Shown here: positions 1 to 56,642 of the stretch, piece after piece | Numbering within the stretch: position 1 is the stretch's first letter | Layout: each line of letters starts with the position of its first letter | Program-made: the position numbers and the translations under genes | Source: Paramoeba atlantica | Lineage: Eukaryota; Protista; Discosea | Length of the DNA stretch: 64,000 nt | NCBI GenBank assembly: GCA_977017575.1 | Contig: CDRNVI010000173.1 | Span: forward strand, 54,732 to 118,731 | Reading direction: 5' to 3' | Notes under the pieces: model-generated | Database searches by the model: none | Told to the model about the DNA's origin: nothing | What the model saw: the letters and a program-made list of their open reading frames with translations, nothing else

Positions 1-164
1 GTGAAGAAGGAAACAGAAGAGTGAGTGTGTTTGAGAAAGATGGAACATTTCTTTTTTCATTTGGTAAACATCACATGAAAGATCCTTATGGGATTGTTAT
101 TGATTCATTTGGAACAATTATTATTTCTGATTGGGAGAAGAAGTCGATTGAATTTTGGAAATAA
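1..164 (+). CDS. T1: 3' end of a TRIM-NHL family gene (last NHL blades), cut by the window edge
   Basis: The frame from base 3 reads EEGNRRVSVFEKDGTFLFSFGKHHMKDPYGIVIDSFGTIIISDWEKKSIEFWK*(TAA 162-164), matching the C-termini of T2-T8. Confidence 0.92.
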   Translation, partial: EEGNRRVSVFEKDGTFLFSFGKHHMKDPYGIVIDSFGTIIISDWEKKSIEFWK

Positions 165-800
165 CTAATTTTTGAAGAGAGGAGGAAGGTTTGTTTGTCA
201 TTTTCTTTTCTCTTGATTTCTATTCATTTAGCTGGGATTTTGTTTTTTTTTTCTCGATTTTCATTTGTTTTATTTTTTTAAATTAATTAACCATTTTTTT
301 GTTTTTTTGGTTCCTTTTTTCTGTATTTGGGAGGAAAATTAAAAAGAAAATTAACTTTTCCTCTCCCCCTTCCTCTCCTTCTCTTCCTTTTAGTCTCTGG
401 CGCGCTCTTACACATCTTCTTCAATTTCGATTCGATAATTTTCTTTGTGTGTTGTATTATGTTGTGGATGTTCTCTCTTTTTTCCTATTTTGTTTTCTCT
501 TCAAATTTTGGAGGTATTTTTTTCCTCTTTGCTTTGTTTTCTTGATTTGTTTTTATTTTTTTCTTTTTAATTTTTTTTTTGAGAATTTACTTCTGATGTT
601 GGGGTGAACAGAAAAATAGAGCTCCCAAAATGAATCTTCTCCTCTCTTTGTGTTTTGTTTTGTGTGTGTTGGATGGATCAACTTTATTGGCTCTTTTGTG
701 TTTCGTCTCTCTCTCTCCTTCCCCTCTCTTGTGTTGTGTTGTGTTGTGTTGTGTCTTTTTTTTTGTTTTTTCTTTCTGATTGAGGGGGAGGAATAAAACT
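165..800 (+). repeat. TRIM 3'-flank block duplicated at about 4911-5560, with related sequence downstream of other TRIM copies
   Basis: Shared ttttgaagagaggagga, ccttttagtctctgg, cacatcttcttcaatttcgattcgata..ttctttgtgtgttgtattatgttgtggatgttctctc and gtgaacagaaaaataga. Confidence 0.85.
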
Positions 801-1207
801 TCTTGGTTGATCAAATGAGGGTAATTAATACAATCTTTGGGAAAAAGGAAATTTTAATAATTAAAAAAATGAGAATATTACTCCCCCAAAGGAAGAACTT
901 CAACCCACCCCAAAATCGTTTCAAAGAAAGAGAAAATAGAAGAAACAACAACCTTGAAAATGAAAGAAGAAAGATGGGAAACACAAAAAAAGGTGTCAAT
1001 GGAGGAGAGAGAGAAGAGTCATCGATTGGTGTGGAGAAATCGAAAGCAGAAAAGAAGGAGAATCAAAAAAGCGAAGATTGGGAGCGAAAAGACCGTGCAG
1101 TCTCTGGAAGTTAAACACCCTAAAAAGAAGAAGAAGGGAGAGAATTATTAATCCGACAAAAAATGAGAAAAAAAAAAAAGAAAAAACAAACCTTCCTCCT
1201 CCTCTCT

Positions 1208-2763
1208 TCAAAATGATTTCCAAAATTCAATTGACTTATTCTCATAATCTGAAACAATAATTGTTCCAAATGAATCAATAACAACCCCATTAGGATCTCT
1301 CATATGATGTTGACCAAACGAAAAAAGAAATGTTCCATCTTTCTCAAACACACTCACTCTTCTATTTCCTGTATCACAAACAAAAATTCTACCTTCCCCA
1401 TCCACATCAACACTTCCCGGACAATCGAATTGAGAATCACCTGAACCTTCTGTTCCAAAACATCGAATAAAATTCCCTTCAATATCCATCACTTGAATCC
1501 GATGATTCCCCACATCAGAAATAACAATATTCCCATCTCTATCAACTACAACACCATAAGGTTGATCAAATTGACCTTCAGAAAAACCAAAAGAACCAAA
1601 AGAACGAAGAGAAGATCCATCATTATCAAACACTTGAATTCGATCATTTCCAGAGTCAGCAACAATAATTCGACCTTCTTCATCCACATCCACACCACAT
1701 GGTCGGTGAAACTGACCATCTTCAGAACCACTTGATACAAAAGATTTGATCAATTCTCCTTCTTCGTTTAAGATTACAACTCGATAACAATCTTGAGAAT
1801 GATCAAGAACAACAATTTGATCATTCAATCCAATTGAAACATCAACAGGTATCAACTGAAGTGAATCAATTGTTTTCTGAATTGTTGATTCAATCATCTC
1901 ATTTCCTTCTTTATCTCTCACTTTCAATCCACCCTCACCTTCACAAATAAAAATATTCCCATCACTGTTCACACTCACTCCATAAGGTTGATTCTTCAAA
2001 GGAAAAGAAGAAACAACACGAATCGAATCACCACCACCATCACAACAAATCACTCCTTTCTTTGGTTTTGAGAATAATCCAACAACAACTCCTTCAGAAA
2101 CAATATCAGTTGCAGTTTGAAGAAGAGTTGAAAAAAGTTGATCATCAAAAAAGAGAGAAACATCACAATCAGTTGTTGTTGTTGTTGGTGTGTTGGATAA
2201 ACGAATGATTGAATCTTTTCTGATTCTCAAATCTTCTTTCTCTAATTCTATTTCTTTCTTTTCAATTCTTTTCTTTTCTAATTTCTCTTCTAATTCTTTC
2301 ATTTCTTCTTCAATCTTTTTTCTTTTCTTTTCTATCAAAATCAATCTTTTCTCCAATTTATCTCCAATCTTTACAACTTCACTCCTTTTCTCCAAAATAC
2401 TTTCTTCAATTGATTTCACTTTCTCATTATGATCATCATGTGTTTCAAGAATACAACGAGTACAAACAAAAGAAGAACATTGAAAACAATATCCACAGAT
2501 TGTTTCAGATGGGTGTTTTGAACATTCTCTTTTCTTCAAATTCTCCAATCCCATCACTCCCACCACCCCCTCCTCCTCCAATCTTCTTCTTCTTCCACCT
2601 CTTCCCTCAACACCATCTCTTTCAGATCGTTTGTGATTTCGAGTGAAAATGTTTGAGGTGTGAGATGGATCACAAGAATCACAAATAAACATTTTACAAT
2701 CAGAACAAAACATTCGAGTTTGTTCTCCACACGTTTCGAAATTCGCACATTCTGATCCATCTC
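1208..2763 (-). CDS. T2: TRIM-NHL exon 2 only (B-box1, B-box2, coiled coil, 6 NHL); RING exon missing, so RING-less protein or pseudogene
   Basis: Open frame from the family acceptor (aacag|GAGATGGA at 2763) to the stop at 1208. Only about 13 nt of intron remain upstream before the sequence switches to the + strand T3 RING exon. First in-frame ATG is at 2713. Confidence 0.85.
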
Positions 2764-2832
2764 CTGTTGTTTTGTTACCTTCTATATTGTGGTGATGAAC
2801 AACAAAATGAAGGAGAAAGAGAAGAAGAGGTG

Positions 2833-4916
2833 ATGAAAAGAAGAAGAAAGGAAGAAGAAGAGAAAAAGAAAAGATTTGAATGTGGAATCTGTTTGGAGTT
2901 AATGAATTGGGAAAAAGAACCAAGGTTGTTACCTTGTTGTGGTCTTTCTTTTTGTACTCTTTGTCTTACCAAACTCTTTCTTCTTCAAAATCCTTCTCCT
3001 TCTTCTTCCTCTTCTTCTTCTTCTCTTTCTCCTTCTCCTTCTCCTTCTCCCTCTTCTTCTTCTTCCTCTTCTTCTTCTTCTCTTTCTCCTTCTCCCTCTC
3101 CCTCTCCTTGTTTCTCTTCTTCTTCCTCTTCTTCCTCCTCTCCTTCTTTGAAAGGAGTGAAATGTCCAGTTTGTAGAGAAATGAACGAATGTGAAAGCGT
3201 TGAAACACTTTCGATGAATTATTTGATTCCAGAAACGATTGATGTTCTTCTTTCTTCAAATTTGATCTCTTTCTCCAATCAACCAGGTTTTTTTCTCCAC
3301 TTTGGAACTCTCACTTTCTTTCCTCTTTCCTTTCTTTCTTCCTTGAAAAACATAATTTTGAAAAAGAAACAACAGGAGATGGTGGATCAAAATGTGTAAA
3401 TTTCGAAACGTGTGGAGAACGAACTCAAATGTATTGTTCTGCTTGCAACATGTTTATTTGTGATTCTTGTGATCCATCTCACACTTCAACTATTTTCACT
3501 CAAAATCACAAACGATCTGAAAGAGATGGTGTTGAGGGAGGTGGAAGAAGAAAAAGATTGGAAGAGGAGGGAGGGGTGGTGGGAGTGGGATTAGAGAATT
3601 TGAAGAAGAGAGAATGTTCAAAACACCCATCTGAAACAATTTGTGGATTTTGTTTTCAATGTTCTTCTTTTGTTTGTACTCGTTGTATTCTTGGTACACA
3701 TGATGATCACAATAAGAAAGTGAAATCAATTGAAGAAAGTATTTTAGAGAAAAGGAATGAAGTTGTAAAGATTGGAGATAAATTGGAGAAAAGATTGATT
3801 TTGATTGAAAAGAAAAGAAAAAGAATTGAAGAAGAAATGAAAGAATTAGAAGAGAAATTAGAAAAGAAAAGAATTGAAAAGAAAGAAATAGAATTAGAGA
3901 AAGAAGATTTGAGAATCAGAAAAGATTCAATCATTCGTTTATCCAACACACCAACAACAACAACAACAACTGATTGTGATGTTTCTCTCTTTTTTGATGA
4001 TCAACTTTTTTCAACTCTTCTTCAAACTGCAACTGATATTGTTTCTGAAGGAGGTGTTGTTGGATTACTCAAACCAAAGAAAGGAGTGATTTGTTGTGAT
4101 GGTGGTGGTGATTCAATTCGTTTTGTTTCTTCATTTCCTTTGACAAAAGGAACTTTGGGAGTGAGTGTGAACAGTGATGGGAATATTTTTATTTGTGAAG
4201 ATGACGGATTGAGGGTGAGAGATAAAGAAGGAAATGAGATTGGTTCAATTCAGAAAACAATTGATTCATTTGAGTTGGAACCTGTTGATGTTTCAATTGG
4301 ATTGAATGATCAAATTGTTGTTATTGATTGGTCTTCTTATCGAGTTGTAATCTTAAACAAAGAAGGAGAATTGATCAAATCTTTTGGATCAAAAGGTTCT
4401 GAAGATAGTCAGTTTGATGATCCAAATGGTGTGGATGTAGATGAAGCAGGTCGAATTATTGTTGCTGATACTGACAACCACCGAATTCAAGTGTTTGATA
4501 ATGATGGATCTTTTCTTCATTCTTTTGGTTCAAAAGGTTCTTCTGATGGTCAATTTAATCAACCAAATAGTGTTGTAGTTGATGGAGATGGGAATATTGT
4601 TGTTTGTGATTCTGGAAATGATCGGATTCAAGTGATGGATATTGAAGGGAATTTTATTCGATGTTTTGGAACAAAAGGTTCAGGTCCTTCTCAATTAAAC
4701 GAGCCACAAGGTGTTGATGTGGATGGGGAAGGTAGAATTTTTGTTTGTGATACAGGAAACAGAAGAGTGAGTGTGTTTGAGAAAGATGGAACATTTCTCT
4801 TTTCGTTTGGTAAACATCGCATGGAAGATCCTTTTGGGGTTGTTATTGATTCATTTGGAACAATTATTGTTTCTGATTGGGAGAAGAAGTCAATTGAATT
4901 GTGGAAATCGTTTTGA
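2833..4916 (+). CDS. T3: RING-B-box-B-box-coiled coil-NHL protein (TRIM-NHL-like E3 ligase) with truncated N-terminal head
   Basis: Exon 1 ends at 3286 (CCA G|gttttt) and exon 2 starts at 3376 (aacag|GAGATGGT); the phase-1 join is in frame. Motifs: RING CGIC..PCCGLSFCxxC..CPVC, B-box2 CSKHPSETICGFCFQC..C..C...H..H, six NHL repeats. The usual MSENRGKRKR head is absent, so the ATG at 2833 is the first available start. Confidence 0.88.
2991..3147 (+). repeat. TCT/TCC/CCT microsatellite encoding a poly-Ser/Pro loop inside the RING; length differs in every TRIM copy
   Basis: Directly visible between the CxxC..LQNP and KGVKCPVC segments. Confidence 0.9.
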
Positions 4917-6029
4917 AGAGAGGAGGAAGAAAGGGTTTGTTTTTTTTTCATTTTCTTTTCTCTTGATTTTTATTTTTTTTTTCACTGGGACTTTGTTTTT
5001 TCTTCTTTCTTTTTTCTTTTTCTTGATTTCATTTGTTTTTTTTTTCAATTATTTTATTCCTCTCCTCCTCTTCCTTTTAGTCTCTGGGCGCTCTTTTTGT
5101 TCCCAACACATCTTCTTCAATTTCGATTCGATACTTTTCTTTGTGTGTTGTATTATGTTGTGGATGTTCTCTCTTTTTTCCTATTTTGTTTTCTCTTCAA
5201 ATTTTGGAGGTATTTTTTTCCTCTTTGCTTTGTTTTCTTGATTTGTTTTTATTTTTTTTCTTTTTAATTTTTTTTTTGAGAATTTACTTCTGATCTTTTT
5301 TTTGTTTGTGTGAACAGAAAAATAGATCTTCCTATGAGTCTTCTCCTCTCTTTATGTTTTGTTTTGTGTGCGTTAGATGGATCAACTTTATTGGCTCTTT
5401 TGTGTAAAAAAAAGACCTCCTCTCTCTCCTTCCTTTCTCTTGTGTTGTGTTGTGTTGTGAAATTCTGTCTTCTTTCTCCTTTTCTTTTCGATGTTTTTTG
5501 TTTTTTTTTTTGTTCCAAATGCCTCTTCCCTCTCCTCACTTCACTCCTTTCTGTTTCTCTTTCTTTCATTTGTTTTGATTTTTGGGTGGATTTCTCAGTT
5601 CTTCATCCTTTTTGTGGAATAATACTTTGGTTTTTTTTGGTTGATTAAATGATTCAAATTTCTTTTCAATTCTTTCCTTTTCTTTTTCCATTTTTCTCTC
5701 ATTAAAAAAGCATTGAGGATCTTCATTCAACAAAAAGTCTACAAAAACACAAAATTTGCAAAACAGAGAAGAGAAGAAGACAGAATCTAACACAATCACA
5801 AAAGAGAGGATTTGAGGAGAAAGTCTGTTTTTTTTTCACACAAAAGAATAAAAAAAAATTCTTTGAAGTTGATCATCTCAACACAAAAGAGAAGAGAACA
5901 GAAAGAGAGGTCCCAAAGTGAGAATTCAACAACAAACAAAAAAGATCATCAGTGATTTTCTCAAAAAAAAAAACCACCAAAAAAAGCACAACAAAACCAA
6001 AAGAGAAAATAAATTCAACAAAAAACAAA

Positions 6030-8180
6030 TTAGTTGTTCCATAATTCAATGGACCAGGTATCAAAATCTAAAACAAGAATTGATCCAAATGAATCAATAA
6101 CAACCCTAGTAGGGTTCTCCATGTAACCTTTACCAAACGAAAAAAGAAATGTTCCATCTTTCTCAAACACACTCACCCTTTTGTTTACTTCTTCACAAAC
6201 AACAATTCTACCTTCTCCATCCACATCAACACTTAGTGGACCATTGATTCGAGAATCACGTGAACCTTTTCTTCCAAAACATCGAATAAAATTCCCTTCA
6301 ATATCCATCACTTGAATCCGGTCATTCCCAGAATCACAAACAACAATATTTCCATCTCTGTCAACTCCAACACCGTTTGGTTGATTGAATTGACCTTCAG
6401 AAGAACCTTTCGAACCAAAAGAACGAAGAAAAGATCCATCATTATCAAACACTTGAATTCGATCATTCAAAGTATCAGCGACAATAATTCGACCTTCTTC
6501 ATCCACATCCACACCACCTGGTTCATCAAACTGACCATCTTCATCACCATCTGATCCAAAAGATTTGATCAATTCTCCTTCTTCGTTTAAGATTACAACT
6601 CGAAAAGAATCTTGAGACCAATCAAGAACAACAATTTGATCATTCAATCCAATTGAAACATCAATAGGTTTCAACTGAAGTGAATCAATTGTTTTCTGAA
6701 TTGTTGATTCAATCATCTCATTTCCTTCTTTATCTCTCACTCTCAATCAATCACCTTCACAAACAAAAATATTCCCATCACTGTTCACACTCATTCCCCA
6801 AGGTCGATTCTTCAAAGGAAAAGAAGAAACAACACAAAAAGAATCACCACCACCATCACAACAAATCACTCCTTTCTTTCGAAACCCAACTCCTCCTTCG
6901 AAAACAATATCATTTGCAGTTTGAAGAAGAGTTGAAAAAAGTTGATCATCAAAAAAAAGAGAAACATCACAATCAGTTGTTGTTGTTGTTGTTGGTGTGT
7001 TGGATAAACGAATAATTGAATCTTTTCTGATTCTTAAATCTTCTTTCTCCAATTCTATTTCTTTCTTTTCAATTCTTTTCTTTTCTAATTTATCTTCTAA
7101 TTCTTTCATTTCTTCTTCAATCTTTTTTCTTTCTTCCTCAATCACAATCAATCTTTTTTCCAATTTATCTCCTATCTTCACAACTTCATTTCTCTTCTCT
7201 AAAATACTTTCTTCAATCGATTTCACTTTCTTTCTGTGATCATCATGCGTCCCAAGAATACAACAAACACAAACAAAAGAAGAACATTGAAAACAATATC
7301 CACTGATTGTTTCAGATGGGTGTTTTGAACATTCTCTCTTCTTCAATTTCTCTAATCCCACCACCCCCACCTCCAATCTTCTTCTTCCACCTCCCTCAAC
7401 ACCATCTCTTTCAGATCGTTTGTGATTTCGAGTGAAAATGTTTGAAGTGTGAGATGGATCACAAGAATCACAATAAACATATCACATTTGGAACAAAACA
7501 TTTGAGTTCGTTCTCCACACGTTCCAAAATTGGCACATTCCATTCCTCCATCTCCTATTTTGGTTTCTTTTTCATCAATTCAAGAGAGAAGGAAGGTTGA
7601 CAAGAAAAGAGAGAAAAATTAAGAAAAGTGAAAAAAAACTTGATTGATTGGAGAAAGAGAGCAAATTTGAAGAAAGAAGAACATCAATCGTTTCTGGAAT
7701 CAAATAATTCATCGAAAGTGTTTCAATCGTTTCACATTCGTTCATTTCTCTACACACTGGACATTTCACTCCTTTCTTCTTCTTTTCAGTTTGTAATGAA
7801 GATGAGCATGAAGAGGAAGAGGAAGAAGAAGAAGAAGGATTTTGATGATGAAAGAGATTGTTGAGACAAAGAGAGCAAAAAGAAAGACCACAACAAGGTA
7901 ACAACCTTGGTTCTTTTTCCCAACTCATTAACTCCAAACATATTCCACATTCAAATCTTTTCTTTTTCTCTTCTTCTTCTTTCTCTCTTCTTCTCTTTAT
8001 TCTCTCTCCTTCTTCTCTCTCTTTTCTTTGTTGTTCTTGATCTTCTATTTCTTGTTCTTCTCCAATATCACTTTCATCATCATCCTTAGTTTGTTCTTTT
8101 GTTTTTCGTTTATCCTTCTTCTTCTCACTTTTCACAATCTCTATTCCTCCTCTCTTTTTCTCTCCTTTTCCTTCACTCAT
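6030..8180 (-). pseudogene. T4: TRIM-NHL copy with two disabling lesions
   Basis: Exon 1 is 8180-7640 and exon 2 starts at 7554. A 1-nt deletion in B-box1 near 7472 (atgtttattgtgat vs atgtttatttgtgat in paralogues) shifts the frame. An in-frame TGA at 6747-6749 sits where paralogues have GGA. Confidence 0.8.
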
Positions 8181-8855
8181 TTGTTTTCACTTCCAACCCC
8201 CAACAACAAAAAAAAAAAGAAACAACTTTTGAAAAGAGAACAAAAACACAATAAAATAGATGAAGATCTCTGTGAACAATAAAGAATCAATAACCACACA
8301 CACAAAAACAAGAAAAAGAAGAAAATAAAAACCTTTTCTCAAAAAAACTCAAAAAAAGAAAGATCTCTCCCAACAAATCCAACAACAACAAAGAATGGTA
8401 AAAAAAAACACTCTCTCTCTCTCCAAAAAAAGAGGACAAAAAACTAGCAGTAGAAGAGAGAGAGACAAGAAAACGAAAATGTGGAGAGAGACTCCTCCTC
8501 AATCACAACTCACAACACACAAAAGAAAGCCTGAATAATTTCACAAAAAGAGAGAAAAAGAGAGAAAAAGTCTGTCAACAAAAAGAGACTACACACAAAA
8601 GAAATAAAAGAGAAAGAGAGAAAAGAGAGAGACCCAAGAAGATGGAAGAAGAGACGGAATAAGGGAAGAAACAAACAAAAACGAGAGAGAGAGAGAGGGA
8701 AGAAGACAGAAGAAGTGCAGATGAAGAAGGACAAGACTCTCCAAGAGACGGAAGAAGAAGAGGCGAAAGAAAGGAAGAAACAAACAAATCAAGAGAGCCC
8801 CAAAAAAAACTCTGTCTCAAGAAAAAAAGAAAAACAGAAAAATGAGAGAAAAAAA

Positions 8856-8902
8856 GAAAGGGTCCGAAAAGAGGATTCAAAACTTTTTAAACCTCTGAAA
8901 AA
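8856..8902. promoter_or_regulatory. Conserved about 47-bp TRIM upstream element, copy 1
   Basis: gaaagggtccgaaaagaggattcaaaactttttaaacctctgaaaaa, near-identical to the copies at 12352 and (reverse complement) 18571. Regulatory role is inferred from position. Confidence 0.5.
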
Positions 8903-9628
8903 AATATTACAAAAACTCACCAAAAACTTTTTCTTTTTCGTTTTTCCCTCTCCTCTCTTCTCTCTCTTCTCTCTCTTCTCTCTCCTTCTCACTTCACAAC
9001 TCCCTTTGTGTTTGTATCTTTCTTTCTTTATCACTCAATTTTGTGGGAGATTTTTTGTTTTGATTTTGATAAAAGATCAAAAGTTGAAGTTGAAAGTTGA
9101 TTTGAAGTTGAAAAAGTGTCAGGATTATAATGATTGAAACCAAGTTGAAATTTAATTGTCATATTAAACTTTCTTTTTAAACAAATTTCTCTCATTGATC
9201 AACAAAATATTCATTCCTCCTTTTTGAGAAATAACAAAGGAACAAAAAAAAAGAATCTTGAGCTGTATTGAAATTCATTCAACCAAAAAATAGAAGAAGC
9301 ACCCAAAAGAACAGAAAAGGAAAGAAATAACAAAAAAAAGAAAATGTCAGAAAGAGAAGAAGAAGAAGAGAAAACACAAAGATAGGAAAAGCGAAATTGA
9401 GAAAAGTTTTCACAAAAGAAGGATAAATTGAATTGAAAAATTGAAGATGTTGGGAGAGAAGAAGACCGCACCAAAGACTAAAAGGGAGGAGGAGGAGTAA
9501 AATATTAATTTCTTTTCTATTAATTTTCCTCCCAAAAAACAGAAAAAAAAGGAAACAAAATGACAACAAAAAAAATGTTGAAAAGAAAGAAAGAGAAAAG
9601 AAAATGAAAAAAAAAAAACTCTTCAAAA

Positions 9629-11843
9629 TTAGTTATTCCAAAATTCAAGTGATTTTTTCACACCATCCGAAACAATAATTGATCCAAATGAATCAATAAC
9701 AACCCCATGAGGCCCTTCCATGTGACCTTTACCAAACGAAAAAAGAAATGTTCCATCTTTCTCAAACACACTCACTCTTCTATTTTCAAAATCAGAAACA
9801 ACAATTCTACCTTCCCTATCAACATCAACACCTCTTGGATAACTCAATTGAGAATCATCTGAACCATATGTTCCAAAACATCGAATAAAATTCCCTTCAA
9901 TATCCATCACTTGAATCCGGTGATTCCAACAATCAGAAATAACAATATTCCCATCTCTATCAACTCTAATATGGTTTGGGTAATAAAAGTGACCTTTCGA
10001 AGAACCTTTTGAACCAAAAGAACGAAGAAAAGATCCATCATTATCAAACACTTGAATTCGATGATTTGCAGTATCAGCAACAATAATTCGACCTTCTTCA
10101 TCCACATCCACACCACAGGGTTCCTCAAACTGACCATCTTCAGAACCTTTTGATCCAAAAGATTTGATCAATTCTCCTTCTTTGTTTAAGATTACAACTC
10201 GATAAGAACCTTGAGAATGATCAAGAACAACAATTTGATCAACCAATCCAATTGAAACATCAACAGGATCCAAATGAAGTGAATCAATTGTTTTCTGAAT
10301 TGTTGATTCAATCATCTCATTTCCTTCTTTATCTCTCACTCTCAATCCAACCTCACCTTCACAAGCAAAAATATTTCCATCACTGTTCACACTCATTCCA
10401 AAAGATTGACTTGCTAAAGGAAAAGAAGAAACAACACGAAATGAATCACCACCACAAATCACTCCTTTCTTTGGTTTGAGGAATCCAACAACACCTCCTT
10501 CAAAAACAATATCAGTTGCAGTTTGAAGAAGAGTTGAAAAAAGTTGATCATCAAAAAGAGAGATCCCAGTTGGTGTGTTGGATAAACGAATGATGGAATC
10601 TTTTCTTATTTTCAAATCTTCTTTCTCCAATTCTATTTCTTTCTTTTCAATTCTTTTCTTTTCTAATTTCTCTTCTAATTCTTTCATTTCTTCTTCAATC
10701 CTTTTTCTTTTTTCTTCAATCAAAATCAATCTTCTCTCCAATCTATCTCCAATCCTCACAACTTCATTTCTCTTCTCCAAAATACTTTCTTCAATTGATT
10801 TCACTTTCTCATTGTGATCATCATGTGTACCAAGAATACAACGAGTACAAACAAAAGAAGAACATTGAAAACAATATCCACTGATTGTTTCAGATGGGTG
10901 TTTTGAACATTCTCTCTTCTTCAAATTCTCCAATCCCATCACTCCCACCACCCCTCCCTCCTCTTCCAATCTTCTTCTTCTTCCACCTCCCTCAACACCA
11001 TCTCTTTCAGATCGTTTGTGATTTTGAGAGAAAAGAGTTGAAGTATGAGATGGATCACAAGAATCACAAATAAACATGTCACATTTGGAACAAAACATTC
11101 GAGTTAGTTCTCCACATGTTTCGAAATTCGCACATTCTGATCCATCATCTCCTATTTTGGTTTCTTTTTCATCAATTCAAGAGAGAAGGAAAGGTTGAAA
11201 AAGAAAAGAGAGAAAAAAATGAAGAAAAACGAAAAAAATTACTTGATTGATTGGAGAAAGAGATCAAATTTGAAGAAAGAAGAACATCAATCGTTTCTGG
11301 AATCAAATAATTCATCGAAAGTGTCTCAACGCTTTCACATTCGTTCATTTCTCGACACACTGGACATTTTACTCCTTTCAAAGAAGAAAAAGAAGAGGAA
11401 GAAGAGGGAGAGGAAGAAGAAGAAGAGGAAGGATTTTGAAGAAGAAAGATTTTGTTGAGACAAGGTGAACAAAAAGAAAGACTACAACAAGGTAACAACC
11501 TTGGTTCTTTTTCCCAATTCATTAATTCTAAACAGATCCCACATTCAAATCTTTTCGTTTTCTCTTCTTCTTCCTTTCTTCTTCTTTTCATCACCACCAC
11601 TCCTTCTCTTTCTCTTTCTCCTTCTTCACTTTGTTGTTCTCTCTTTCCAAGAACATCCTCATTTCTTCTTTCTCTTTGTTCTTTTTCATCATCATTATCT
11701 TCAATCACAACAACATCAGCATCGTCACAATCTGTTGTTTGATCTTCCTCCTCTTTCTTTCCTCTTTCGATTTTTCTCTTTTTCTCAGTTTCTAATTCTG
11801 TTTCTCCTCCTCCTCTCTTTCTCTTTCCTCTATTTTCACTCAT
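9629..11843 (-). CDS. T5: intact TRIM-NHL-like E3 ligase
   Basis: ATG 11843 (MSENRGKRKR). Exon 1 ends at 11243 (TCA A|gtaatt) and exon 2 starts at 11151 (aatag|GAGATGAT). The join is in frame to the stop at 9629, with all domains present. Confidence 0.92.
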
Positions 11844-12351
11844 TTTGTCTCTCTGTGGGAAAAAACAAGAGAGAGGGGGAAGATCTCTGTGAAAGAAAAA
11901 GAAGAAATGTGAGGAAGGGGAAATTCGCACAAAAGAAATGGAAGAAAATGAAAATGAAAATGAAAAAGAAACCAAACCAAACTATCCGAGAAAACCAATT
12001 CTTCTTCTTCTTGGTCAAGACCAAAACGAATTCTCTCTAAGAAGGGAAAGATGCCAAAGAGCCACAAATATTCCAAGTACCGAAGAGAGTAGAGGAGCCC
12101 AAAACAATATCTCTGGAAAAGAGAAACAAAAGAACGAAAACAATCAAACGAAGACACAACTGAAGAGAGGAGGCGGAGACTTCGAGTAAAAGAGTCTGAA
12201 AAAAAAAGAGAAGAGAAGAGAGAATCTTCTTGGGAAAAAGGAGAGAGAGAGAGAGAGAAAGGTCCAAAACGAAGACACAGGCAACTGAAGAGGTACAAAC
12301 GAAAACGAGAGAGAGGGAAGAAAAGGAAACAGAAAAACACAAAAGAAAAAA

Positions 12352-12400
12352 GAAAGGGTCCGAAAAGACGATTCAAAACTTTTTTAACATCTGAAAAAAC
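12352..12400. promoter_or_regulatory. Conserved TRIM upstream element, copy 2, midway between divergent T5 and T6
   Basis: gaaagggtccgaaaagacgattcaaaacttttttaacatctgaaaaaacc, about 510 nt from each ATG. Confidence 0.5.
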
Positions 12401-12908
12401 CTCCTTTTTTTTGTTTTTTGTTTTCACTCTTCTCTCTTCTGTGTCTTCGTTTGGGACCTTTCCCTCTCCCTCCCCCTCTCTCTCTCTTCTCTCATCTGTG
12501 AGAGAGACCTTTTGATTGTTTTGTCCTTTTTCCTCATTTTGTTTTGGGGTTCATTGTTTCATTTCTTTCTTTGAAAGGGATTTCGTTTTTGGTGGATTGT
12601 TTGGTTTCTTTCTTTTTCATTTTCTTTCTTTTTTATTTTCATTTTTTCATTTTTTCCATTTTCCTCCTTTCTTTTTTGTGGATTTTTTATTGTTTCCCCT
12701 CCCTCACATTTCTCTTCTTTTCACAAAGATATCTTCCTCTTGTTTTTTGTTTTTTCTGACCTCAGATCCCTTCTTTCTCTCTCTCTCTCTCTTGAGTTAA
12801 CTTTTGGAGGTATTTTGTTTGTTCTTTTGTCTTTTTCTTCATTCTCACTTTTCTTCTTTCCTTTTTATTGTTGTTGATTGATCTATTTTCCCACATACAG
12901 AGACAAAA

Positions 12909-15147
12909 ATGAGTGAAAATAGAGGAAAGAGAAAGAGAGGAGAAGAAACAACTGAGAAAAAAAGAGAAACCAAAAGAGGAAAGAAAGAGGAGGAAGAACA
13001 AACAACAGATCATGGTGATGATGTTGATGTTGTTATGATTGAAGATAATGATGATGATGAAAAAGAACAAAGAGAAAGAAGAAGTGAAGATGCTCTTGGA
13101 AAGAGAGAACAACAAGGAAGAGAAAAAGAAGGAGAAGAAGAAAGAGAAGGAGAAGAGGTGATGAAGAGAAGAAGAAAGGAAGAAGAAGAGAAAAAGAAAA
13201 GATTTGAATGTGGAATATGTTTGGAGTTGATGAGTTGGGAAAAAGAACCAAGGTTGTTACCTTGTTGTGGTCTTTTTTTTTGTTCTCTTTGTCTCAACAA
13301 TCTCTTTCTTCTTCAAAATCCTTCTTCTTCTTCTTCCTCTTCATCTCCCTCTTCTTCTTCCTCTTTGAAAGGAGTAAAATGTCCAGTTTGTAGTCAACTG
13401 AACGAATGTGAAAGCGTTGAAACACTTTCGATGAATTATTTGATTCCAGTAACGATTGATATTCTTCTTTCTTTAAATTTGATCTCTTTCTCCAATCAAT
13501 CAGGTTTTTTTCTCCATTTTTGAACTTCCTCTCTTTCTTTCCTCTCTTTCTTTCCTCTCTTTTCTTTCTTCCTTTTTCAGAGAGAAAGTTGAAAACATAA
13601 GATATGTTTAACATTTTTAATATATTAAGTAGTTTTGAAAAACAGGAGATGGTGGATCAGAATGTGTGAACTTCGAAACGTGTGGAGAACGAACTCGAAT
13701 GTATTGTTCCAAATGCGATATGTTTATTTGTGATTCTTGTGATCCATCTCACACTTCTTCTATTTTCACTCGAAATCACAAACGATCTGAAAGAATTGGT
13801 GATGGTGGAAGAAGATTGGAGGTGGGGGTGGTGGGAGTGATGGGATTGGAGAATTTGAAGAAGAGAGAATGTTCAAAACACCCATCTGAAACAATTTGTG
13901 GATATTGTTTTCAATGTTCTTCTTTTGTTTGTGGTTGTTGTATTCTTGCAACACATGTTAAACACATTGAGAAAGTGAAATCAATTGAAGAAAGTATTTT
14001 GGAGAAGAGAAATGAAGTTGTGCAGATTGGAGATAGATTGGAGAGAAGATTGATTTTGATTGAAAAGAAAAGAAAAAAGATTGAAAAAGAAATGAAAGAA
14101 TTGGAAGAGAAATTAGAAAAGAAAAGAATTGAAAAGAAAGAAATAGAATTGGAGAAAGAAGATTTGAGAATCAGAAAAGATTCAATTATTCGTTTATCCA
14201 ACACACCAACCTCTGATGATCTTTCTCTCTTTTTTGATGATCAACTTTTTTCAACTCTTCTTCAAACTGCAAATGATATTGTTTCTGAAGGAGGATTTGG
14301 GAAGAAAGGAGTGATTTGTTGTGATGGTGGTGGTGATTCTTTTCGTGTTGTTTCTTCTTTTCCTTTGAATCCACCTTTTGGAGTGAGTGTGAACAGTGAT
14401 GGGAATATTTTTATTTGTGAAGGTGTGATTGGATTGAGTGTGAGAGATAAAGAAGGAAATGAGATGATTGAATCACCAATTCAGAAAACAATTGATTCAC
14501 TGGAACCCTTTGATGTTTCAATTGGATTGAATGATCAAATTGTTGTTCTTGATCATTCTCAAGATTCTTTTCGAGTTGTAATCTTAAATGAAGAAGGAGA
14601 ATTGATCAAATCTTTTGGATCAAAAGGTTATCAAGATGGTCAGTTTAATTCTCCATATGGTGTGGATGTAGATGAAGAAGGTCGAATTATTGTTGCTGAT
14701 ACTTTGAATCATCGAATTCAAGTGTTTGATAATGATGGATCTTTTCTTCATTCTTTTGGATCGAAAGGTTCTTCTGATGGTCAATTTTATGGACCAAACG
14801 GTGTTGTAGTTGATGAAGATGGGAATATTGTTATTTGTGATTCTTGGAATCATCGGATTCAAGTGATGGATATTGAAGGGAATTTTATTCGATGTTTTGG
14901 AACAAAAGGTTCAGGTGATTCTCAATTCGATTGCCCAAAAGGTGTTGATGTGGATGGGGAAGGTAGAATTGTTGTTTGTGATGCAGGAAATGGAAGAGTG
15001 AGTGTGTTTGAGAAAGATGGAACATTTCTTTTTTCTTTTGGTCAACATCACATGGAGTATCCTCGTGGGGTTGTTGTTGATTCATTTGGATCAATTATTG
15101 TTTCTGATTGTGTGAAAAGGTTAATTGAATTGTGGAAATCATTTTGA
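12909..15147 (+). CDS. T6: intact TRIM-NHL-like E3 ligase
   Basis: ATG 12909. Exon 1 ends at 13503 (TCA G|gttttt) and exon 2 starts at 13646 (aacag|GAGATGGT), in frame to TGA 15147. A probable 5'UTR intron ends at ccacatacag just before the ATG. Confidence 0.92.
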
Positions 15148-15691
15148 CTGTTTTGACTCTTCTCTCTCTCTTTGCTTATCTCCTTCTTTTTTCTTCTCTT
15201 TCTTTTTTTGTCTCTCAATTTTGTTGTGTTCTTTTTGTTTTCTTTGTTTTGATTTTGGGGTTTGGGAGGGAGTTCTTCATCCTTTGTGGAATAACATTCT
15301 CATTTTTTTTTAAAAAAATTATCAAAAAAAATTCTCATTTGATCAACCAAAATATCAAAAAAAGTGTATTGAAAAAAGAAGAAGAGAGCAAAAAGATCAA
15401 AAAGATCGAAATTTCAAAAACACAATCTTAGAAAAGACACTATTCAAAAAGAAGAGAGAATTTCACAAGACAACTAAACACAAAGAGAAGCGAAATTGAG
15501 AAAAGTTTGAAGATAAAAATCAAAGGAATGAAGAACTGGGAAGAAGAAGACCGCACCAAACACTGAGGGGGAAAGAAGGAAAGGGAGAATAAAGAATTAA
15601 TTTCTTCTTTCATTTTCCTCTAAAAACAGAAAAATGAGACAAAAAAAAAACAAAAAAAGAAAAGGAAACAAAGAACACCTCCACTTTAAAA

Positions 15692-17914
15692 TTAGTTCCA
15701 CAATTCAATCGACTTTTTCGCATAATCAGAAACAATAATTGTTCCAAATGAATCAACAACAACCCCTTGAGGTCCTTTCATATGACCTCCACCAAACGAA
15801 AAACGAAATGTTCCATCTTTCTCAAACACACTCACTCTCCCATTTCCTCCATCACAAACAACAATTCTACCTTCCTCATCCACACCAACACCTCTTGGAT
15901 AACTCAATTGAGAATCACCTGAACCTTTTGTTCCAAAACATCGAATAAAATTCCCTTCAATATCCATCACTTGAATCCGATGATTCCAAGTATCAGAAAT
16001 AACAATATTCCCATCTCCATCAACTACAACATTGTCAGGTTGATTAAATTCACCTTCAGATGTACCAAAGAAACCAAAAGAACGAAGAAAAGATCCATCA
16101 TTATCAAACACTTGAATTCGATGATTCAAAGTATCAGCAACAATAATTCGACCTTCTTCATCTACATCCACACCATTTGGATCATCAAATTGACCATCTT
16201 CATCACCAATTGATCCAAAAGATTTGATCAATTCTCCTTCTTTGTTTAAGATTACAACTCTATGAGAATCTTGAGAATGATCAAGAACAACAATTTGATC
16301 ATTCAATCCAATTGAAACATCAACAGGATTCAAATAAAGTGAATCAATTGTTTTCTGAATTATAGATTCAATAATCTCATTTCCTTCTTTATCTCTCACT
16401 CTCAACCCACCACCCTCAGATTTACAAACAAAAATATTCCCATCACTGTTCACACTCATTCCCCAAGGTGGATTCTTCAAAGGAAGAGAAGAAACAACAC
16501 AAAAAGAATCACCACCACCATCACAACAAATCACTCCTTTCTTTGGTTTGAGGAATCCAACAACACCTCCTTCAAAAACAATATCAGTTGCAGTTTGAAG
16601 AAGAGTTGAAAAAAGTTGATCATCAAAAAAGAGAGAAATATCACAATCAGTTGTTGTTGTTGTTGATGGTGTGTTGGATAAACGAATAATTGAATCTTTT
16701 CTTATTCTCAAATCTTCTTTCTCCAATTCTATTTCTTTCTTTTCAATTCTTTTCTTTTCTAATTTCTCTTCTAATTCTTTCATTTCTTTTTCAATTCTTT
16801 TTCTTTTCCTCTCAATCAAAATCAATCTTTTCTCCAATTTATCTCCAATCCTCACAACTTCATTTCTCTTCTCTAAAATACTTTCTTCAATTGATTTCAC
16901 TTTCTCATTGTGATCATCATGTGTACCAAGAATACAACGAGTACAAACAAAAGAAGAACATTGAAAACAATATCCACAAATTGTTTTAGATAGGTGTTTT
17001 GAACATTCTCTCTTCTTCAAATTCTCCAATCCCATCACTCCCACCACCCCTCCCTCCTCTTCCAATCTTCTTCTTCTTCCACCTCCCTCAACACCATCTC
17101 TTTCACATCGTTTGTGATTTCGAGAGAAAATAGTTGAAGTGTGAGATGGATCACAAGAATCACAAATAAACATGTTACAATCAGAACAATACATTTGAGT
17201 TTGTTCTCCACATGTTTCGAAATTCGCACATTCTGATTCATCTCCTGTTGTTTTGTTTTTCAAAAACTATCTCAAAAAGAAAGAAAAGAGGAAAGAAAGT
17301 GAGAGTTCAAAAAAGTGGAGAAAAAAACCTGATTGATTGGAGAAAGAGATCAAATTTGAAGAAAGAAGAACATCAATCGTTTCTGGAATCAAATAATTCA
17401 TCGAAAGTGTCTCAATGCTTTCACATTCGTTCATTTCTCGACAAACTGGACATTTTACTCCTTTTAAAGAGGGAGAAGAAGAAGAAGAAGAGGAAGGATT
17501 TTGAAGAAGAAAGAGTTTGTTGAGACAAAGAGAGCAAAAAGAAAGACCACAACAAGGTAACAACCTTGGTTCTTTTTCCCAACTCATCAATTCCAAACAT
17601 ATTCCACATTCAAATCTTTTCTTTTTCTCTTCTTCTTCCTTTCTTCTTCTTTTCATCACCTCTTCTTCTTTTTCTCTTTCTCTTTCTCTTTCTCCTTCTC
17701 CTTTTTCTTCATTTTGTTGTTCTCTCTTTCCAAGAACATCCTCACTTCTTCTTTGCTGTTCTATTTCATCATCGTCATCTTCAATCACAACAACAACATC
17801 ATCACAATCTGTTGTTTGATCTTCTTTTTCTTTCTTTTCTCTTTTGGTGTCTCTCTTTTTCTCAATTTCCAATTCTATTTTTCCTCTCTTTCTCTTTCCT
17901 CGATTTTCACCCAT
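15692..17914 (-). CDS. T7: intact TRIM-NHL-like E3 ligase
   Basis: ATG 17914 (MGENRGKRKR). Exon 1 ends at 17329 and exon 2 starts at 17244, in frame to the stop at 15692, with all domains present. Confidence 0.92.
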
Positions 17915-18570
17915 TTTTTTTCTGGAGAAAAGAAATAAATAACAAGAAAAATAAAGGAAGAGAAGTGATGAAGAAAAAGACAAAAGAACAAACAAACACC
18001 CCAAAAGTTAACTCAAGAGTGAGAAGGGGGATCTGATGTCAAAAAAACAAAAACAAGAGAGAGGGAAGATATCTCTGTGAAAGAAAAAGAAGAGAAATGT
18101 GAGGGAGGAGAGACAATATAAAATATACAAAAAAGAAATGGAGGAAAATGGAAAAATGAAAAAGAAAAAACTCAATACCAAGAGAAAAACAATACACACA
18201 AAAAGGAACAATGGAGAATACCAATTCTCAGAGAGAGAGAGATTTCTGAGAATTTTTTTTTTCAAAATGGAGAAAAGGGAATTGAAAAAAGAAGAAATAA
18301 AAATACAAACATCTCTCAAAAAGGAAAGAGAAAAGAGGATCCCCAAAACGAAAAAAATGAGAAGGAGAGCCCCAAAAACCTTCAAAAAAAGAAGAAGGAC
18401 AATCTTCGAACCCAAAAACAGAGGTCCAACAGGAGAGAGAGGGGGAGAGAGAGAGAAGGGGGTGTCCAAATAACAATGAGAGAGAAGAACCACAGCAGAG
18501 AAACCAAGGAAGAGAGAAAGAGGAAGAAGAGAGAGGGAAGAGAAGAGGAAAAACAAAAAAAAAGAGAGAA

Positions 18571-38027: not shown

Positions 38028-40119
38028 ATGAGTGAAAAGAGAGAAAAGAGAAAGAGAGAAGTGGTGAGAAGTGAGAGTGAGGAGGGAAAAAGAGGAAAGA
38101 AAGAACAAATTCCTCATGATGTTGTTGTGATTGAAGATGATGTTGATGAAAGAGAACAAAGAAGCGAGGACGCCCTTGGAAAGAGAGAACAAGGAAGGGA
38201 AAGAGAAGGAGAAGAAGTGGTGATAAAAAGAAGAAGAAAGGAAGAAGAAGAGGTGATGAAAAGAAGAAGAAAGGAAGAAGAAGAGAAAAAGAAAAGATTT
38301 GCATGTGGAATATGTTTGGAGTTGATGAGTTGGGAAAAAGAACCAAGGTTGTTACCTTGTTGTGGTCTTTCTTTTTGCTCTCTTTGTCTTAACAAACTCT
38401 TCCTTCTTCAAAATCCTTCCTCTTCTTCTTCTTCTCCCTCTCCCTCTTCTTCTTCCTCTTCTTCTTCTTCTCCCTCTTCCTCTTCCTCTTCTTCTTCTCC
38501 CTCTCCCTCTTCTTCATCAGAACCAACTGAGGAGAAGAAAAAAGGAGTGAAATGTCCCGTTTGTCGAGAAATGAACGAATGTGAAACAATTGAAATACTT
38601 TCGATGAATTATTTGATTCCAGAAACAATTGATGTTCTTCTTTCTTCGAATCTAATCTCTTTCTCCCAGCAACCAACTTCAGGTTTTTACTTTTGTTTTT
38701 TTCTTTTCTTTTCTTTTCTTTCTCTTTGGAGGATAATTGACTGACTTCCTGTTTTAAACATAAAAAATAGAAGAGGAAGTTCAGGGAGTGATGGGATTGG
38801 AGAATTTGAAGAAGAGAGAATGTTCAAAACACCCATCTGAAACAATTTGTGGATTTTGTTTTCAATGTTCTTCTTTTGTTTGTACTCGTTGTATTCTTCA
38901 AACTCATGATGATCACAGAAAGAAAGTGAAATCAATTGAAGAAAGTATTTTGGAGAAAAGGAATGAAGTTGTAAAGATTGGAGATAGATTGGAGAGAAGG
39001 TTGATTTTGATTGAAGAAAAAAGAAAAAGAATTGAAAAAGAAATGAAAGAATTAGAAGAGAAATTAGAAAAGAAAAGAATTGAAAAGAAAGAAATAGAAT
39101 TAGAGAAAGAAGATTTGAGAATAAGAAAAGATTCAATTATTCGTTTATCCAACACACCAACAACAACAACAACAACAACTGATTGTGATGTTTCTCTCTT
39201 TTTTGATGATCAACTTTTTTCAACTCTTCTTCAAACCGCAAATGATATTGTTTTTGAAGGAGGTGTTGTTGGAAAAGGAGTGATTTGTTGTGATGGTGGT
39301 GGTGATTCACTTCGAGTTGTTTCTTCTTTTCCTTTAATTGAACCTTATGGAGTGAGTGTGAACAGTGATGGGAATATTTTTATTTGCGACTTTCTGGGTG
39401 GATTGAGAGTGAGAGATAACGAAGGAAATGAGATGATTGAATCAATAATTCAGAAAACAATTGATTCACTTGAATTGGAACCTGTTGATGTTTCAATTGG
39501 ATTGAATGATCAAATTGTTGTTCTTGATGGGTCTCAAGATTCTGATCGAGTTGTAATCTTAAACAAAGAAGGAGAATTGATCAAATTATTTGGATCTAGA
39601 GGTTCTCGAGATGGTCAGTTTGATGGTCCATGTGGTGTGGATGTGGATGAAGAAGGTCGAATTATTGTTGCTGATACTTTGAATCATCGAATTCAAGTGT
39701 TTGATAATGATGGATCTTTTCTTCGTTCTTTTGGTTCAAAAGGTTCTTCTGAAGGTCAATTTTGCTATCCTCGTGGTGTTGTAGTTGATAGAGATGGGAA
39801 TATTGTTATTTGTGATACTTGGAATCATCGGATTCAAGTGATGGATATTGAAGGGAATTTTATTCGATGTTTTGGAACAAAAGGTTCAGATGATTCTCAA
39901 TTCAATTGCCCAAGAGGTGTTGATGTGGATGGGGAAGGTAGAATTGTTATTGGTGATACAGAAAATAGAAGAGTGAGTGTGTTTGAGAAAGATGGAACAT
40001 TTCTTTTTTCGTTTGGTAAGGATCATATGGAAAATCCTTGTGGGGTTGTTGTTGATTCATTTGGAACAATTATTGTTTTAGATTGCGAGAAAAATTCAAT
40101 TGAATTGTGGAACGAATAG
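38028..40119 (+). CDS. T8: TRIM-NHL-like protein lacking B-box1 (RING-B-box2-coiled coil-NHL)
   Basis: ATG 38028. Exon 1 ends at 38682 (TCA G|gttttt). The acceptor aaaaatag|AAGAGGAAG at 38771 gives in-frame EEEVQGVMGLENLKKREC, and the gene ends at TAG 40119. Confidence 0.88.
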
Positions 40120-44942: not shown

Positions 44943-46290
44943 TTATTCAACAGTAATTTCACCAATTTTCGTTATAACATTGGTGCTTGTTTGAAGTGAA
45001 GCCATATTGTATGTGATGTTGTAGTAAGTCCCATCCTCATGAACAGCTGTTTTGTAGTTGAGGAGAGGAAATTTTTCTCAAAAAGAGGAAAAAGAGGGAA
45101 AAAAAAGAAACTCAAACCAATCATTGAATTCTTTCGACCAAAAGTGCAATATTTTCGGCCAGGTGGAATTTTATGTTTGAGAACACTCCTCTCCGAGCTG
45201 ACATAAGACATCAAATAAGCAGGAAAATATGCCCCCACGTTTTGATCCCTAGAATTAAGAAGAAAAATATTGTTTTTTCAGTGTTCAAAAAAAAAGAACC
45301 AAATAAAAAACAAACGTTATTGGGTCCTGCACTTGAAAAAAATGAATTGTCTCTGAACCACTTGAAACAAGCAATAAATTCGAGTCATCACTGAATTTTA
45401 GACAGGAAATTTCAGCTGAGGTGGTTCCTCTTTGAAATTCTTTCAACTTCTTGCCCGTAGCAATTTCAAAAATTTGAATGACTCTTCCCCAATCATCTGT
45501 TGTTGCCAGAAGAGTCCCTTCTTTATTCATGGTGACGCATGCAAGTTTGCTTGTGTTGGTCGCAATATCAATAGGGACTTTATCAGAACAATCAATATGA
45601 GTTGTACCTTTTTGAGAAGATATCTGATGAATCAAAGAGAGGTGCCAAAAAAAAACATGATGCAAAAAAACAAATAGAAGGAAAAATACCCAGAACAGTT
45701 CCAGGGCAAGCAAAGATTGTCCGATTTTCTGTTGGCAATAACGAAAGTATTCCTGTTGGGTTTGGCGCGGTGTCAGCGCAATGGGTCAAGTGAAACTCTG
45801 GAAAACTGTAGACATACACTTTTGTTTCAACAGCAACCACCACTCTATTCATCAAATCAATTCATTTCCCATCAAAGAATGGTTCTATTCTCAAATTTTT
45901 TCGAACAAAAAAAAAACAAACCGATCCCTTTTTAACCGAACAGCTTTCACTTCTGTGTGGAGATCAAGTTCCGCGAAACAAGAGTTTGTAAAATCATCCC
46001 AGAACATGACCTTATGAGGGGGAAACTTTGGAGTTTGCCCACCACCAACAAGGGCAAGAACATTTGTTTTGTAGAACATTTCAACGATCCCAATCCCCCC
46101 ATTCAGATCTGCCAAGAATATATTTTAATCCCCCTCTCTCGAATCAAAAGAGTTGGATGAAAAAACAAAACCACAAACCTCTTTGAAACCGTTCCTTTAA
46201 CGGATCACAATTGTAAACAATGAAACCCGTCTCAGTCCCACAAGCAAAACACTCATCACTTTGATTGAACCCAACATACAGGAGCGACAT
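44943..46290 (-). CDS. ATG18: PROPPIN / ATG18-family WD40 protein, WIPI3/4 (WDR45B)-like
   Basis: [37 protein letters not shown]; [47 protein letters not shown]; EFQRG at the F/LRRG position; last exon ends ITVE* at 44943. Confidence 0.9.

Positions 46291-47450: not shown

Positions 47451-56642
<9,192 letters not shown>

Follow-up and report, generated by a model that had tools for sequence, protein, structure and literature searches.

A TRIM-NHL-type gene family of Paramoeba atlantica that probably joins a constant RBCC part to a diversifying recognition face

How can neighbouring copies of a gene stay nearly alike along most of their length and yet differ from one another at a few short loops in almost every copy? 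The question is raised by a stretch of 64,000 nucleotides from Paramoeba atlantica (GenBank assembly GCA_977017575.1, contig CDRNVI010000173.1, forward-strand positions 54,732 to 118,731; here ‘the window’, numbered from its first letter), in which six-frame open reading frames (ORFs), tblastn and inspection of splice sites located eight TRIM-NHL paralogs, T1–T8. Their architecture sets a RING-like finger, B-boxes and a coiled coil (together the RBCC part) ahead of a six-bladed NHL propeller. An earlier note, made from the letters alone, had remarked that the residues around the conserved Pro of each blade and in the D-x-x-N-x-R loops change from copy to copy, and had proposed that they form a ligand face. 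The analysis that followed confirmed this observation and partly supported its interpretation: we regard it as probable that the copies belong to a lineage-specific TRIM-NHL-type family, in which a constant RBCC part is joined to a diversifying recognition face of about 30–36 top-face residues.

The location of the variable residues was assessed with loop classes set from the strand order of the T7 model before variability was viewed, the d-to-a and b-to-c loops being taken as top and the a-to-b and c-to-d loops as bottom. Thirty-six sites were defined by rule: every d-a loop contributes the three positions surrounding its conserved Pro, and every D-x-x-N-x-R b-c loop a further three (for example, T7 codons 16472–16474 and 16463–16465). 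Across 77 paralogs, 42 propeller sites exceeded 2 bits of entropy, 34 of them in top loops, eight at strand ends (mostly the residue following the conserved Pro) and 0/56 in bottom loops; top-loop entropy was higher than bottom-loop entropy (Mann-Whitney p = 6e-12). The 36-site signatures were unique in 77/77 paralogs. Among 23 intact paralogs, pairwise amino-acid difference reached 0.71 at the 24 sites of blades 3–6 and 0.56 at the 12 sites of blades 1–2, compared with 0.13 for the remaining propeller positions and 0.11 for B-box2 and coiled coil together.

All the blade 3–6 motifs and D-x-x-N-x-R variants quoted in the earlier note were found exactly as written, as was the invariant scaffold stretch IQVMDIEGNFIRCFG; DEPG, NQPNG, NGPLS, ENPTR and EEVNKR derive from a pseudogene, T4. 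The coiled coil averaged 94% pairwise identity between window copies, the RING 89%, B-box2 88%, B-box1 83% and the NHL domain 80%, so that ‘near-invariant’, the term applied to RING, B-box2 and coiled coil alike, fits the coiled coil and was generous for the other two.

The variable loops coincide with a ligand face described in LIN-41, in which 14 residues touch an RNA hairpin on the ‘upper’ surface of the propeller (Kumari et al., PMC5908797). In aligned TRIM71, 14/14 of these contacts fall at motif positions P-2, P-1 and P+1 of the d-a loop or D+1 and D+2 of the b-c loop, as the earlier note had stated for LIN-41, and 11 of the 12 contacts alignable to T7 belong to the 36-site set.

Selection was estimated on a codon alignment of the 23 intact paralogs (six from the window and 17 from ENA loci; 433 codons, from B-box2 to the end) with our own implementation of the Goldman-Yang likelihood, which reproduces the IQ-TREE M0 value exactly; trees were fixed and only a global branch-length scale was fitted. 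For the whole alignment, comparison of M2a with M1a gave 2ΔlnL = 454, with 8.2% of codons at ω (the ratio of non-synonymous to synonymous rates, dN/dS) 5.7 and 68% at ω 0.07. Because the family recombines, the comparison was repeated on three segments, each with its own tree, yielding 2ΔlnL of 152 and 129 for the two propeller halves (11–13% of codons at ω 4.1–5.4) and 31 for the segment before the propeller (2.5% of codons). Thirty sites had an M2a posterior >0.95: 24 in top loops, four at strand-a starts (P+1), two in the coiled coil and 0/56 in bottom loops. This clustering on one face (Fisher p = 8e-10), rather than scatter over the structure, is what the ligand-face proposal had called for.

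At the 36 sites, ω was 3.55 when set against propeller-wide dS (p = 2e-50) and 1.70 when set against the dS shared with conserved codons one or two positions away (p = 3e-7). In the ten youngest pairs, the proportion of non-synonymous differences (pN) was 0.37 at hypervariable sites, compared with a synonymous proportion (pS) of 0.05 elsewhere, and youngest-pair codons with a single-nucleotide difference numbered 112 replacement to 13 silent. The coiled coil is under strong purifying selection (dN/dS 0.13). Nei-Gojobori estimates by structural class, with dN/dS of about 1 in top loops and scaffold, were judged uninformative, since the top-loop class mixes conserved with variable residues and path averaging counts a change at two or three positions as partly silent; likelihood models and counts limited to same-residue codons were used in their place.

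Several points weigh against a ligase family with a positively selected top face. The assignment to the ‘top face’ comes from loop order and LIN-41 mapping, not from model coordinates. When dS was taken from the hypervariable codons alone, ω was 1.20 (range 1.1–1.4) and not significantly different from 1, so that the excess of non-synonymous over synonymous divergence expected by the earlier note stands against neighbouring and gene-wide dS and is lost against same-codon dS; with tree dN at about 8 per site, these codons are close to saturated. Synonymous change was 2.6–3.4 times higher within two codons of variable sites than further off, and part of the M2a signal could be local rate heterogeneity. 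Pervasive recombination inflates site-model tests, and recombination and saturation together affect all tree-based estimates. As to the ligase itself, the RING of T7 scores below the Pfam cut-offs (zf-RING_2 25.2 bits against 27.3, zf-RING_UBOX 21.9 against 25.2), and its seven Cys ligands are kept while the His ligand is replaced by Leu (CGLSFC, compared with CGHSFC in TRIMs).

The paralogs exchange sequence, since all three segments reject the trees of the other two (ΔlnL 101–161, approximately unbiased test p at most 1e-4). Nearest neighbours switch between segments: T2 and T3 are 2% apart in the coiled coil and 10–16% apart in the blades, and the difference between T4 and T7 is 4% for blade 1 and 27% for blade 6. 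When identical runs were tested by permutation, tracts of 60–380 nt emerged, the longest of which beat all 300 permutations and joins inverted neighbours (genes at 6270+ and 11034- of ENA locus L002). Outside the exons, in a comparison that left out the T6 intron, the introns and 3′ flanks of most window copies differed by 40–55% (p-distance 0.4–0.55), far above exon silent sites; the exceptions were the introns of T3 and T7 (23%) and of T4 and T5 (15%), and the downstream flank of T1, which is closest to that of T3 (17%, p-distance 0.17).

Such divergent introns and flanks, together with demonstrable gene conversion and a same-codon ω that does not differ from 1, could be read as the mark of an old family at saturated neutral divergence, in which conversion and purifying selection keep the scaffold alike and unconstrained loops simply drift. 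We consider this reading highly unlikely. Tracts of 60–380 nt should overwrite loops too, yet synonymous sites three to five codons off differ by 1–5% and loop codons by about 45% per non-synonymous position, and ω remains at 1.7 relative to the immediately adjacent codons. Moreover, drifting loops would not be expected to keep their lengths, which in blades 3–6 are conserved in about 95% of paralogs, or to show a residue composition so far from mutational expectation: Trp was enriched 4.7-fold and Gly 3.3-fold at the sites, along with Glu, His, Asp, Asn, Lys, Cys and Tyr, and Ile (0.12-fold) and Pro (0.15-fold) were depleted, along with Met, Leu, Val and Ala. Nor was there among the 77 paralogs any pair with fewer than 14 differences over the 36 sites. 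If the scaffold is similar through recent ancestry, loop codons change 7–10 times faster than silent sites; if it is similar through conversion, the observed tracts would erase neutral loop differences as they do nearby silent ones. On both accounts, something actively creates or protects the loop differences.

Active creation need not imply selection for novelty. Locally raised mutational input, whether by clustered multi-nucleotide mutation, error-prone repair or very short templated conversions limited to the loop codons, might suffice with little or no such selection, and several observations favour it. Among codons for the same conserved residue, third-position differences amounted to 0.03–0.16 within two codons of a variable site and 0.006–0.03 at five or more codons, and fitted tree dS was 6.4 at variable codons, 3.8 at one to two codons away, 1.1–1.4 further off and 2.3 before the propeller. 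About half of the differing hypervariable codons differed at two or three nucleotides, even in the youngest pairs, and identical loop codon strings occurred in non-sister copies (T3/T7 in blade 3, T5/T7 in blade 5). We nonetheless think an explanation by mutation alone very improbable indeed. Strictly conserved Pro, Gly, Asn and Arg codons are interleaved with the variable ones, which makes the effect residue-specific at the protein level, and non-synonymous change still exceeds the local synonymous rate. Raised silent divergence linked to selected codons is, besides, the expected by-product of selection opposing conversion, and sharp synonymous islands of this kind in homogenised genes offer a clean case in which to study the opposition between selection and gene conversion. 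No process is known to us that would act on 12 short patches per gene across about 100 germline genes. A mechanism resembling that of diversity-generating retroelements was also dropped, as variation affects all three codon positions and all bases and distinguishes about 100 separate genes from one another instead of arising within one.

For a family with a diversifying recognition face, the constant part would act as the effector and oligomerisation module common to the paralogs, probably as a ubiquitin ligase, and the top face as a recognition surface held different between paralogs by diversifying selection, with gene conversion homogenising everything around it. The family would then amount to a germline-encoded repertoire of binding specificities directed at fast-changing or very diverse ligands, and each copy may, as the earlier note proposed, bind a different one.

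What those ligands might be is constrained by charge. Net charge at the 36 sites ran from -8 to 0 in the window copies (T3 having the most acidic face, at -8) and from -7 to +7 in the family, compared with +4 in TRIM71; Lys or Arg occupied 0–1 of the 12 positions equivalent to LIN-41 contacts in window copies and 0–4, mostly 0–1, in the 77 paralogs, compared with seven in TRIM71. Judged by these residues, the LIN-41-type basic RNA pocket is absent, which supports, as far as that type of binding goes, the suggestion that acidic faces argue against RNA for some copies. It is accordingly unlikely, in our estimation, that the paralogs are RNA-binding regulators like Brat and LIN-41, each with a different RNA motif, and the ligands would more likely be proteins than hairpins of the LIN-41 type. 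Thin/TRIM32, the closest structural match, is a protein binder. On the other side, the variable positions are exactly those of LIN-41 RNA contact, and the 36 sites of some family members carry a net positive charge, up to +7; another kind of RNA binding by these basic-faced members is possible. The NHL RNA surface has been described as evolutionarily plastic, Brat using the same propeller face with different residues (PMC5908797).

The two exons divide the protein. The exon 1 product comprises a charged low-complexity tail and the RING-like finger with its poly-Ser insert, and the exon 2 product B-box1, B-box2, coiled coil, a short linker and the NHL domain. In T7, Pfam recognised the NHL domain (108.4 bits) and two stretches of zf-B_box (35.2 bits, cut-off 24.1), with a further weak ANCHR-like_BBOX match to B-box1. 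The Pfam scan returned no SPRY match, the C-terminal domain being NHL, and no filamin match (PF00630) in T7, which agrees with the TRIM32/Thin subtype. The finger is constrained, as indicated by a RING dN/dS of 0.24–0.27. Exon 1 of T7 and other first exons read CCGLSFC, with an extra Cys just ahead of the lost His site, and the poly-Ser tract, which lies between RING ligands 6 and 7, is very variable in length (about 7 to 60 residues). The N-terminal tails (12909–13100, 17700–17914 and others) carry KRKR and KRRRKEEEEKKKR clusters resembling nuclear localisation signals, with acidic runs between them, and this tail region has the highest dS in the gene (0.47).

AlphaFold2 modelled the T7 propeller from 89 aligned sequences with a predicted local distance difference test score (pLDDT) of 95.1, with 23 strands forming six blades and a closing strand at the N terminus. 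Foldseek matched it to the NHL domains of Thin, TRIM71 and TRIM2 at template modelling (TM) scores of 0.83–0.86, and the best PDB sequence matches were the NHL domains of TRIM71, Thin, TRIM2/3 and Brat. The coiled coil was predicted as one 72-residue helix (residues 125–196 of the exon 2 product; pLDDT 90–97 for the most part), with a short helix after it at 215–233; only about 45 residues, including that short helix, separate coiled coil from propeller. Mixed dimers through the shared coiled coil, envisaged in the earlier note, are a plausible conjecture. Within exon-2 residues 146–161 of T7 (about 16781–16828, minus strand), one coiled-coil position switches between Leu, Glu and Trp across paralogs, its neighbours varying among Glu, Lys and Arg; this stretch contains the two coiled-coil sites with M2a posterior >0.95, and the L/E/W switch could restrict or tune the choice of dimer partner.

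Among known proteins, TRIM71/LIN-41 is the best sequence match in the PDB and shares two B-boxes, coiled coil and a six-bladed NHL propeller (TM about 0.84) with ligand contacts at the same loop positions, along with a RING to which the RING-like finger of the Paramoeba proteins corresponds. It differs in possessing a filamin domain, a basic RNA pocket and the RING His ligand and in lacking the poly-Ser insert, and it is a single conserved developmental gene, whereas the Paramoeba family comprises more than 90 fast-diverging genes. The NHL domain of Thin/Abba, the Drosophila TRIM32, is the best structural match (6d69 and 6xg7; TM 0.83–0.85, 32% identity). Thin, like the Paramoeba family, has no filamin domain. 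It is, however, a single-copy conserved gene for which a hypervariable face is not reported. Brat and Mei-P26 have the same fold (TM 0.75–0.82) and the same ligand-binding propeller face (PMC5908797), but only 19–25% identity; each is a single gene, with an RNA surface that is basic or mixed.

A closer parallel in evolutionary pattern is offered by other TRIMs. Fish finTRIM, btr and hltr and primate TRIM5alpha combine a constant RBCC part with a C-terminal domain whose hypervariable loops are positive under M1a/M2a, and they show tandem clusters, recombination between paralogs, and domain gain and loss (PMC3137616, PMC2533329). The Paramoeba family likewise exhibits tandem clusters with gene gain and loss and positive selection concentrated in surface loops of the recognition domain (ω not significantly exceeding 1 with same-codon dS); the variable module is B30.2/SPRY in finTRIM and TRIM5 and NHL here. 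In a scheme based on vertebrates, group 1 TRIMs, which lack SPRY and include the NHL class, are slow and conserved, and the fast immune-type TRIMs are of the B30.2 class (PMC2533329). The NHL class in Paramoeba is the opposite of that conserved, slow group with its many low-copy developmental RNA regulators: more than 90 genes, with one face as variable as an antigen-binding site. A literature search turned up reports neither of a hypervariable NHL face nor of a TRIM-NHL expansion under selection.

Large, lineage-specific tandem families with a positively selected substrate-binding part and a conserved ligase-docking part are also formed by nematode F-box and MATH-BTB genes, which differ in fold and encode adaptors, not RING-bearing ligases. 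If the Paramoeba family is a recognition repertoire, the ‘constant ligase, variable sensor’ design would have arisen in it independently and on another fold, and the family would offer some 100 natural NHL binding surfaces built on a single scaffold. More tentatively, and as a possibility we would not put at even chances, the NHL propeller may be the variable module in a germline-encoded set of some 100 ubiquitin-ligase receptors that act inside the cell in defence or genetic conflict (against viruses, transposons or non-self), with gene conversion between neighbours of alternating orientation reshuffling its diversity one blade at a time. A defence repertoire, if that is what it is, would be a counterpart of the B30.2 loops of TRIM5 and finTRIM or of the leucine-rich repeats of NLRs. 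The TRIM-NHL subfamily has been treated as animal-specific (Marin 2012, PMC3503706); if the host is a non-animal, the full TRIM-NHL architecture would exist outside animals as well.

The window holds a small part of the family. Protein search found about 95 further paralogs on ENA contigs, at 46–85% identity (at least 90 paralogs outside the window), the next match being TRIM71 at 36% over the propeller only. Similar arrays were present on five fetched contigs of ENA assembly ERZ24900291; these five loci and the window, 159 kb in all, contain 36 NHL-bearing loci, 26 of them uninterrupted and about 10 broken or partial, some through locus edges. Gene orientation alternates almost throughout the arrays (window 1–18000 and ENA loci L001–L005), so that neighbours stand head-to-head or tail-to-tail. 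An assembly artefact was rejected as the source of the copies, since 23/23 intact paralogs differ by at least 5% at the nucleotide level; T7 recurs identically on an ENA contig (P0001), possibly from the same data. The ESM Atlas contains large B-box/NHL clusters in molluscs, brachiopods, echinoderms and arthropods, and expansion alone is therefore not unique. In L001, a paralog ORF at about 19151–20740 (minus strand) continues beyond the usual C-terminus for some 85 residues, in low-complexity sequence, an indication that the normal stop codon was lost.

The window copies are listed in Table 1. Each complete copy consists of two exons and a phase-1 GT..AG intron of 84–142 nt, and T3, T5, T6, T7 and T8 are intact. 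The span treated in the earlier note (1208–17914) begins at the T2 stop and ends at the T7 ATG, with T1 and T8 outside it. Genes have been both gained and lost in this array. T2 and T3 are fused head-to-head at about 2764–2832: T2 retains its acceptor AG at 2764–2765, the sequence upstream of which is antisense of T3 exon 1, and T3 exon 1 is itself truncated, without the N-terminal charged tail of the other copies. In T4, one nucleotide is missing from B-box1 (between 7471 and 7472), and blade 1 is interrupted by a TGA nonsense codon at 6747–6749. T8 has lost B-box1 through an in-frame deletion, the rest being intact, and is separated from the main array by an ankyrin-repeat gene region.

Table 1. 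TRIM-NHL copies of the window and features of the reference copy T7.
Feature	Position	Strand	Structure	Basis or remark
T1	3..164	+	3′ end, blade 5 b-c loop to stop; cut by window start	translation, tblastn
T2	1208..2763	-	exon 2 only: B-box1, B-box2, coiled coil, NHL	RING exon missing
T3	2833..4916	+	exon 1 2833-3286 (RING), intron 3287-3375, exon 2 3376-4916	
T4	6030..8180	-	exon 1 7640-8180, intron 7555-7639, exon 2 6030-7554	pseudogene
T5	9629..11843	-	exon 1 11243-11843, intron 11152-11242, exon 2 9629-11151	intact
T6	12909..15147	+	exon 1 12909-13503, intron 13504-13645, exon 2 13646-15147	intact
T7	15692..17914	-	exon 1 17329-17914, intron 17245-17328, exon 2 15692-17244	intact; reference copy
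T7 coiled-coil helix	16676..16891	-	exon-2 residues 125-196	AlphaFold2; dN/dS 0.13
T7 six-bladed NHL propeller	15695..16543	-	283 aa; 36 rule-defined hypervariable codons in d-a and b-c loops	
T8	38028..40119	+	exon 1 38028-38682, intron 38683-38770, exon 2 38771-40119	

The introns of T3, T4, T5, T7 and T8 start with GTTTTT or GTAATT, not with a GTAAGT-like sequence, and are T/C-rich in their 5′ part and A-rich immediately before the AG. A putative RNA run (its type guessed) contains 15% of the words sampled from the T6–T7 stretch, a weak hint of expression. An Rfam scan of window positions 18000–64000 gave no match. Housekeeping-type exons flank the array, encoding an M3-type zinc peptidase with an HEFGH motif (41104–41649, minus strand), a WD-repeat PROPPIN/Atg18-like protein (45285–45713, minus strand) and a TTBK/CK1-like kinase (57731–58758, plus strand).

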